A stretch of 63,624 nucleotides of DNA, counting the filler, from Reticulomyxa filosa (Eukaryota > Protista > Foraminifera), in NCBI GenBank assembly GCA_000512085.1. It is 26 parts of 26 records of this genome, joined end to end, with 100 filler letters (N's around TTAATTAATTAA, not from the genome) between each part and the next. Parts side by side here need not be neighbours in the genome. Positions count along the whole stretch, not along the records: positions 10,392 to 11,719 come from ASPP01029701.1; 25 more parts are not named here. One strand, given 5' to 3'. The notes under the pieces were generated by a model. It did not search any database. It was given only the letters and a program-made list of their open reading frames with translations, and had not been told where the DNA came from. The translations under genes were made by a program, and so were the position numbers. The first letter of the stretch is position 1; every line of letters starts with the position of its first letter. This document shows positions 10,292-11,719 of the stretch, one piece after another.

Positions 10292-11295
10292 NNNNNNNNN
10301 NNNNNNNNNNNNNNNNNNNNNNNNNNNNNNNNNNNTTAATTAATTAANNNNNNNNNNNNNNNNNNNNNNNNNNNNNNNNNNNNNNNNNNNNATAATTTTG
10401 GAACAACAAAAATGACTTTTTCTATTTTACATGCTCTATGTTTCAATTCTCGATCCATGGATCTCCAAGAGATACTTTCGTGAAAATCTTGAAAAAGAAA
10501 AGAGACTAGATTCTTTGAACACTGACTTATGCTTATTTATTCAATCTTTGGAAATATCTATCTTGGCATGCAAAGTCTTCAAAAGCTTCATTGTGGACAT
10601 GACCATAAAGCAGTACGTTTTCTTTTTGATAATTTGATCGAACTGGGAGAATATCTCAAAATGACTTGTTCTGGATCTAAAATAATGACAAACAGACGCA
10701 AGAATCAAGTAAAGTAGTTTTTTTTTTTTTATTTTATGTATTTACATAATACATTAATGAGATTGTTGTAGTTACCAAACCATTTGCAAGTCACACATAA
10801 TGTGTAGCATCCACATAAACACATCAATCCAAACAGCAGAATTTATTTAATTTTGGAGTCAATTGCAGCAACAACGATGACGACGACGACGACATTTGTC
10901 AATCCTTATTCAATCCAAAGTAAGATTACATTTCATTTTGTCCAAAGTTCTTTTTTTTGTTTGTGGGATTCATTTGATGTTTAAAAACGTATATAATATA
11001 TACATATATGTACATGTATATAGAACTTTAAAAAGTCGAAGCATTTGTAGTTATCATTGCCACCACCACCACCACCACCAACCACAATCACAATCATTGC
11101 CATATTAATCGACAATATACGTATCCACATTACTCCGACGGCGAATACGAATACGAAAACGCGAGACGACGGAGATAAAAACGAATACGAGACGATGTGC
11201 AATCGTAGGAGAAGTATTAGTGCACATAACAATGGGGGGGGGAAGCATTTGCGAACATAGAAAGAGAGAAAGGGAGTGAGCATATTATTTTTAAC

Positions 11296-11719
11296 GCAGG
11301 AGACTTTGTAAGTGAGTCGGACTCAACTACCTCTCAACATCGCGCGCCAGGAGAATCGTATCCGCTGACGTACCTCTCAACAGTCGCACTTTACACATAT
11401 GGCCGGAGACTTGAAATGATGATTACCTCTCATCTTCGCACTTAACAAAAATATGGCCGGAGACTTATAGGTCAACGCCTACCTCTCAACTGTCACCAAT
11501 ATGTTAAGGCTGGAGACTTGTAAAATCAACACACCTCTCTACTGTCGCCTACATGTAATGCCGGAGACTTGTATCGTCATTCCGAATACCTCTCAACCGG
11601 CTTTCTTTTTTAAAGTTTTGTAATGAGAGCGCCGTGTACATACTCCCGACTACCTCTCAATGCCCTTTTTTTTTATATCTCGCGGGAGACTCATAGTGCT
11701 AAGCACCACCTCTCTACCG
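11296..11719. repeat. Dual-motif array: 8 units of GCCGGAGACTT-[unique 15-25 nt]-TACCTCTCAAC-[unique linker]; truncated by the contig end; probable structured ncRNA or DNA-site array
   Basis: (G)GAGA at 11299, 11350, 11405, 11459, 11512, 11563, 11624 and 11685. Invariant ACCTCTC at 11329, 11372, 11425, 11481, 11533, 11588, 11652 and 11708. Confidence 0.92.

Follow-up and report, generated by a model that had tools for sequence, protein, structure and literature searches.

We report a real and non-random tandem array, located in the final 424 bases (11296-11719) of a 1328-base piece (10392-11719) of the window, i.e. the whole stretch of 63,624 nucleotides analysed here. The array is one ancestral unit, tandemly copied and later diverged, and not a set of constant repeats placed around unrelated inserts. 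In our tentative reading, it may well be an old, non-coding minisatellite of ~ 54 bp carrying reiterated putative protein-binding boxes. An earlier note on this DNA had proposed unique inserts, sequence-independent folds and a CRISPR/TIGR-like architecture, all of which failed on testing.

The unit was defined by two short boxes (Table 1). The second one, ACCTCTC, occurred eight times, exactly and on the + strand only, with a spacing of 43-64 bp, for a chance expectation of 0.07 and with none of 200 shuffles reaching eight occurrences. The first one, GGAGACT, was exact in 6 of the 8 units, carried a single mismatch in unit 2 and was reduced to GAGA in unit 7. The presence of ACCTCTC and GAGA in all units, as previously described, was thereby confirmed. 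Box 1 was found 20-30 bp (mostly about 20-26 bp) ahead of box 2 in seven of the eight units, and the distance from box 2 to the next box 1 was 21-38 bp, mostly 30-34. Measured from box 1, successive periods were 51, 55, 54, 53, 51, ~ 63 and ~ 59, the first five as in the earlier note and the last two replacing its values of 61 and 61; measured from box 2, they were 43, 53, 56, 52, 55, 64 and 56. The periods are not all multiples of three and, as the note had stated, no reading frame is kept across units. Two further elements of the earlier description were recovered, namely T-runs behind units 6 and 7 and an outer helix in unit 6. The segments separating the boxes differed in length, from 13 to 23 nt for the inserts (box 1 to box 2) and from 14 to 31 nt for the linkers (box 2 to the next box 1). 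The placement of the boxes relative to the helical turn gave a similar outcome at 10, 10.5 and 11 bp per turn, and was thus not specific to 10.5.

Table 1. Coordinates of the tandem array and of its units, counted along the window.
Feature	Position	Strand	Description
Whole array	11296..11719	+	8 head-to-tail units of 43-64 bp, all in one orientation; truncated by the piece end
Unit 1	11296..11345	+	Box 1 GGAGACT 11299-11305; 23-nt insert with tgagt/actca hairpin; box 2 ACCTCTC 11329-11335; linker short, GC-rich
Unit 2	11346..11400	+	Box 1 GGAGAAT (1 mismatch) 11350-11356; box 2 11372-11378; linker AACAGTCGCACTTTACACATATGGCC
Unit 3	11401..11454	+	Box 1 11405-11411; box 2 11425-11431; linker homologous to unit 2 linker
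Unit 4	11455..11507	+	Box 1 11459-11465; taggt/gccta hairpin in insert; box 2 11481-11487
Unit 5	11508..11558	+	Box 1 11512-11518; box 2 11533-11539, followed by TAC instead of AAC
Unit 6	11559..11621	+	Box 1 11563-11569; box 2 11588-11594; outer gccgg/ccggc helix; T-rich linker 11602-11611
Unit 7	11622..11680	+	Box 1 degenerate, AGAGCGC 11626-11632; box 2 11652-11658; T9 11666-11674
Unit 8 (cut by the piece end)	11681..11719	+	Box 1 11685-11691; gtgc/gcac hairpin in insert; box 2 11708-11714

An nhmmer profile built from the eight units recovered exactly these eight copies in the piece, with no copy upstream of the array or on the - strand. Tandem Repeats Finder called no repeat at the array because its copies are too diverged. 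Once aligned with MAFFT, the units displayed a mean column identity of 55% and pairwise identities of 45-76%, the central units 3 to 6 being the most similar (64-76%, with five of their six pairs above 70%) while pairs involving units 1, 2, 7 or 8 were 45-65% identical. Beyond the boxes, the inserts were more similar among units than shuffled inserts (p=0.008), and the same was true of the linkers (p<0.002, the observed score being reached by 0 of 500 shuffles), of which those of units 2 and 3, as well as those of units 4 and 5, could be aligned by eye. Inserts and linkers had been described as all different from one another; both are instead homologous between units and, since they resemble each other more than shuffles do, the whole unit is best explained as one diverged tandem duplication. 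With eight units of 43-64 bp in one orientation, non-coding and homologous over their full length, the array has the properties of a minisatellite, whose head-to-tail units measure about 10-100 bp.

Conservation along the unit was strongly uneven. Extended consensus boxes were visible in the alignment (..ATGGCCGGAGACTTGTA.. and ..TACCTCTCAAC.GTCGC..), and 9 of the 53 well-occupied columns were invariant, 7 of them in a single run corresponding to ACCTCTC, which at 7 nt is the longest invariant block. Random placement of nine invariant columns produced such a run in 1 of 100,000 permutations (p=1e-5), and GGAGACT formed a second, near-invariant block. The earlier claim of two short motifs far better conserved than the remainder, unlike in a uniformly decaying repeat, is therefore supported, and the boxes are conserved above the background of the unit, as a model of DNA sites expects. 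Because this conservation is so strongly clumped, the boxes are probably under constraint.

Uneven mutation or gene conversion, instead of selection, could however be the source of the clumping. The corresponding alternative, a functionless minisatellite in decay whose boxes only look conserved, because mutation or indel rates are uneven, because gene conversion was patchy or through the selection bias of a genome-wide scan, is possible if somewhat unlikely. It agrees with the homology of the whole unit at 45-76% identity, with the stronger divergence of the edge units and with the silence of Tandem Repeats Finder, as well as with a box 1 already lost in unit 7 and mutated in unit 2. The lack of any sign of transcription signals, structure or coding also fits, and the array was singled out from very many windows. 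Against it, a 7-nt block identical in all eight units at ~ 55% column identity is very unlikely under uniform decay, a second block is exact in six units, and a chance origin is hard to sustain even when allowing for thousands of such arrays per genome.

In the reading that we prefer, that of constrained protein-binding boxes, a single ancestral unit would have been duplicated in tandem within AT-rich, eukaryote-like intergenic DNA. Two boxes, (GCC)GGAGACT(TGTA) and (T)ACCTCTC(AAC.GTCGC), would then have hardly changed, keeping the same order and orientation, while the DNA between them drifted by substitutions and small insertions or deletions. These boxes would be recognised by their sequence, as reiterated DNA sites for one or two sequence-specific proteins, and the array might work as a multi-site platform, either as satellite binding boxes, as insulator or enhancer sites, or as spacer-promoter or transposon subterminal repeats. 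Protein binding on DNA is what we infer as the source of the constraint. A GAGA..GTA core is common to both boxes in inverted orientation (GGAGACTTGTA and, on the other strand, GAGAGGTA), which would be compatible with a single protein family recognising both. The variable length of the segments also favours DNA sites, because loosely spaced sites tolerate variation and protein-measured guides do not; for the same reason, segments of 13-23 and 14-31 nt disfavour a guide reading, unlike the lengths of ruler-set guides. Against an array of sites, the box spacing is itself loose (20-30 and 21-38 bp), and the array represents a single locus of eight units. The second option of the earlier note, an array of DNA sites for recombination, comes close to this preferred reading.

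The structural signal expected from an array of RNAs was examined on both strands. The GAGA/TCTC pairing appeared in most minimum-energy unit folds; it consists of four invariant pairs and thus carries no information on covariation either way. The GTA/TAC stem, which had been described as closing many inserts, was unpaired in a third of cells through one-sided changes. Across the eight aligned units, no pair displayed changes on both sides, i.e. no compensatory change was found. The RNAalifold consensus was limited to the four-pair stem, at -0.41 kcal/mol (+) and -1.14 kcal/mol (-), and the whole array folded like its shuffles (z 0.01 and -0.14 for the two strands), with no excess of structure; the conserved fold that had been proposed thus did not emerge. 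Single-unit folds ranged from z +0.5 to -3.4 over both strands with no consistent signal; unit 6 reached -12.6 kcal/mol (z -2.2) and, for the - strand, a z of -3.4. Relative to units with shuffled inserts, folding of the - strand was nominally better (p=0.02).

Considered separately, the inserts folded slightly better than shuffles (p=0.07 on the + strand, 0.04 on the -) and the linkers worse. Small hairpins of 4-6 bp, which the earlier note had listed, were present in inserts 1, 4, 6 and 8, and four of the eight inserts folded at 0 to -0.2 kcal/mol, being essentially unstructured; the idea of inserts that fold independently of their sequence did not withstand these tests. Complementarity of inserts and linkers, searched against the rest of the piece, was at chance level only. 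An RNA or single-stranded DNA role is nonetheless possible, because half of the inserts carry a hairpin and the units fold nominally better on the - strand.

Known RNA families offered no match either. Searching Rfam 15 at permissive E-values, the best candidate within the array was ceN33, with 17.2 bits for a gathering score of 75 (E=1.4), so that no family came near significance, and a tRNA scan of the piece returned none. Taken together, these results weakened the small-RNA reading of the array, namely a polycistronic or multi-promoter array of short RNAs in which the boxes would be RNA processing or protein-binding signals and the variable parts the payload, and we regard it as unlikely. 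This reading would account for the dual-box grammar and the strict single orientation, and it can call on the insert hairpins, the frequent GAGA-TCTC pairing, the slightly better folding of the inserts, the T-runs after units 6 and 7, and the A/T-rich, TATA-like stretches that six of the seven linkers carry 5-20 nt ahead of box 1. It is opposed by the missing compensatory changes and the broken GTA/TAC stem, by a consensus fold energy of about zero and an array that folds like shuffles on both strands, by the chance-level complementarity and the lack of an Rfam family or tRNA, and by variable parts that are residual homologues of uneven length. In addition, the T-runs follow only two of the eight units, and the CRISPR, TIGR and C/D tests presented below fail. 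A eukaryotic array of ~ 50-nt RNAs, with a dedicated protein recognising GGAGACU/ACCUCUC and with the variable parts serving as guides or decoys, in a counterpart of dual-box guide arrays like TIGR, found no support in these tests and appears very unlikely.

Nothing on the piece pointed to a coding function. No ORF above 100 codons was detected on its 1328 bases, with stops in all six frames; a Pfam scan of three ORFs returned sub-threshold matches only, and ORF, Pfam and relatives searches revealed no protein-like sequence upstream of the array on the piece. A 73-aa ORF-like stretch (10416-10634) had no relative among 1.84 billion representative proteins, and an index of assemblies contained no record of four ORFs of the piece. 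At 10416-10717, ORF-like stretches on the + strand gave way to a stop, a run of T13 and A/T-rich DNA, and may represent the 3' part of a gene together with a short intron (GTACGT at ~ 10611). On the - strand, GAGAG|GT occurred in every unit and 6 of the 8 inserts ended in AG, delimiting intron-like segments of 17-27 nt. Coding sequence interrupted by such tiny introns was rejected, since stops persisted in all frames after computational removal of the segments.

Several other features were observed on the piece. The 10-mer TAATTTTGGA occurred twice, exactly, at 10393-10402 and 10848-10857; it includes AATTTTGG, which has the shape of the Sm-binding site of snRNAs and spliced-leader RNAs and may occur by chance in AT-rich DNA, and Rfam identified no snRNA on the piece. 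Microsatellites, (ACG)6.7, (CCA)8.3 and (CGAATA)3.3, lay within 400 bp (10874-10893, 11060-11085, 11142-11161 and 10990-11022, including a TA-rich patch). This palindromic patch, (TA)n/ATATATACAT, and the neighbouring microsatellites form a mix typical of eukaryotic intergenic DNA. Directly upstream of unit 1, a purine-only, GA-rich tract (agaaagagagaaagggagtgag, 11258-11280) resembled the complement strand of the CTCTC core in box 2, and may represent either a decayed remnant or plain low-complexity sequence. The piece is AT-rich and plausibly eukaryotic non-coding DNA, with a GC content of 34% in the flank and 46% in the array and no break in the composition pattern at their junction.

This context bears on a further alternative, in which the units are sub-repeats of a larger element, either promoter or terminator copies of an rDNA intergenic spacer or transposase-bound subterminal repeats of a transposon. 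It narrows the site-array reading to a named context, and in that specific form we find it quite improbable. In its favour, the array occupies the extreme end of a short contig, the kind of place where multi-copy DNA interrupts an assembly, its GC content departs from that of the flank, T-runs and A/T-rich stretches separate the boxes, and a single orientation is kept throughout. However, rRNA, transposase and terminal inverted repeats were not found on the piece, and units so diverged would not alone break an assembly. Finally, an artefact of the assembly or of the library, for instance concatenated adaptors or the chimeric or adapter-derived contig end that the earlier note had considered, is scarcely credible despite the location at the contig end: the units differ by 24-55%, whereas those of an adaptor concatemer would be almost identical, a search with three common adaptor cores gave no match within 3 mismatches, and the composition pattern is continuous from flank to array.

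No related array was found in viral, metagenome, prokaryote, plasmid and phage collections, which consist mostly of prokaryotic, viral or environmental sequence, so that this blank says little about a eukaryotic sequence. A one-unit pattern gave 14 single chance matches in viral contigs. A two-unit pattern matched 2 times in viral contigs, 87 times in metagenome contigs and 36 times in prokaryote genomes, which by a rough estimate is about what a 21-base pattern holding two variable gaps yields by chance. Where several box words lay close together, the matches were CRISPR arrays, coding repeats of the leucine-rich-repeat (LRR) type or unrelated short-period repeats, and a three-fold ACCTCTC pattern retrieved from viral contigs only repeats with periods of 15, 30, 45 or 60 nt, taken as coding and unrelated. 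The array had no blastn match among plasmids and phages, and a literature search for the box strings returned unrelated primers only.

Some of the rejected sequences illustrate how such scans can mislead. In the metagenome contig OFEQ01031516.1 (1132-1305; L041), a 23-bp repeat holds both TACCTCTCA and GGGAGACT in each unit and sits between coding-looking blocks, by eye from an animal cyclase-type gene. Although both words are shared with the array, period and context differ, and we consider the resemblance a coincidence. Repeats with periods of 63-69 nt, each unit containing GGAGACTT/GGAGATTT and ACCTCTC, were observed in viral or metagenome contigs (L057, L099, L110, L184 and L228); they are taken, from translation by eye, to be coding genes of the leucine-rich-repeat type, and represent a trap for motif-pair scans. 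Coding LRR repeats keep their frame, whereas the array does not and contains stops.

If the boxes are real binding sites, the locus would be a place where some sequence-specific protein assembles in many copies, in a poorly known eukaryote. Its candidate identities would then include a chromatin boundary, a promoter or enhancer in a spacer, the end of a transposon and a satellite box, and the motif pair would provide a handle for finding the protein and its other sites. The array alone is an ordinary kind of object, with its main value as a worked example: an old tandem duplication in which two boxes are constrained can produce a pattern of dual motifs and variable inserts, and evidence from covariation or RNA is needed before such a pattern is taken for a guide-RNA array.

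Among known systems, clusters of box C/D snoRNA genes form polycistronic arrays in plants, Euglena and trypanosomatids. They resemble the array through their short tandem units, single orientation and eukaryote-like genomic setting, but the present units are shorter than typical snoRNAs. A single C box (RUGAUGA, at 11416) and a single D box (CUGA, at 11365) were found in the array, in different units, and none on the - strand. With C and D boxes thus absent from the units as a set and no significant Rfam snoRNA match, a box C/D cluster was rejected.

With CRISPR arrays, the locus shares direct repetition in one orientation with more variable DNA in between. CRISPR repeats, however, are 23-50 nt long and near-identical, and their spacers are unique and of constant length, whereas the present array has no invariant block longer than 7 nt, and its would-be spacers are of unequal length and represent diverged versions of one another. 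A CRISPR array was therefore rejected on both repeat identity (55% in mean column terms) and spacer constancy and uniqueness.

TIGR arrays consist of ~ 36-nt units with two 9-nt spacers (rarely up to 12) and alternating 8-12-nt repeats (PMC12045711). They also have intervals of the box D-N9-box C type, flanks that covary or form palindromes, and an adjacent tas gene with a Nop domain, and the hosts of TIGR-Tas are prokaryotes and their viruses (PMC12045711; bioRxiv 10.64898/2026.09.09.750476). The array resembles them in its two alternating short conserved elements, its two variable segments per unit and a weak overall sequence conservation that escapes repeat finders. It differs in its units of 43-64 nt, in variable parts of 13-31 nt that change in length and are mutually homologous, and in its eukaryote-like context. 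Searching for the box D-N9-box C grammar, the best combination gave 3 matches, out of register with the units, and shuffles gave up to 4. Unit and spacer lengths that do not correspond, a grammar at chance and the lack of covariation led us to reject a TIGR array and, together with the homology of the variable parts, to regard as unsupported the CRISPR/TIGR-like polycistronic array of structured small RNAs initially proposed.

Arrays of DNA sites provide closer parallels. Hypervariable minisatellites have a common core, and reiterated sites are found in the Su(Hw) sites of the gypsy insulator, in the enhancer and promoter repeats of rDNA spacers and in the subterminal repeats of CACTA or Ac transposons. 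Like the present array, insulator, rDNA spacer and transposon site arrays combine short conserved sites with variable, loose and often A/T-rich spacers over a few hundred bp of non-coding DNA; in contrast to these, the 1.3-kb piece shows no gene, transposon end or rDNA next to the array, and the boxes corresponded to none of the sites tested.

The human alpha satellite carries the 17-bp CENP-B box in monomers of 171 bp (PMC2115871, PMC2289308). In satellites of this type, as here, the units diverge while a short box stays recognisable at regular intervals, in non-coding DNA and without RNA structure; the satellite box is bound on the DNA by a sequence-specific protein, as we propose for the present boxes. 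The present array differs by its two boxes per unit, its ~ 54-bp unit, the 8 copies seen and a much higher divergence (45-76% identity). A satellite with a binding box would thus be its nearest working analogue, as an analogy of mechanism and not of membership.
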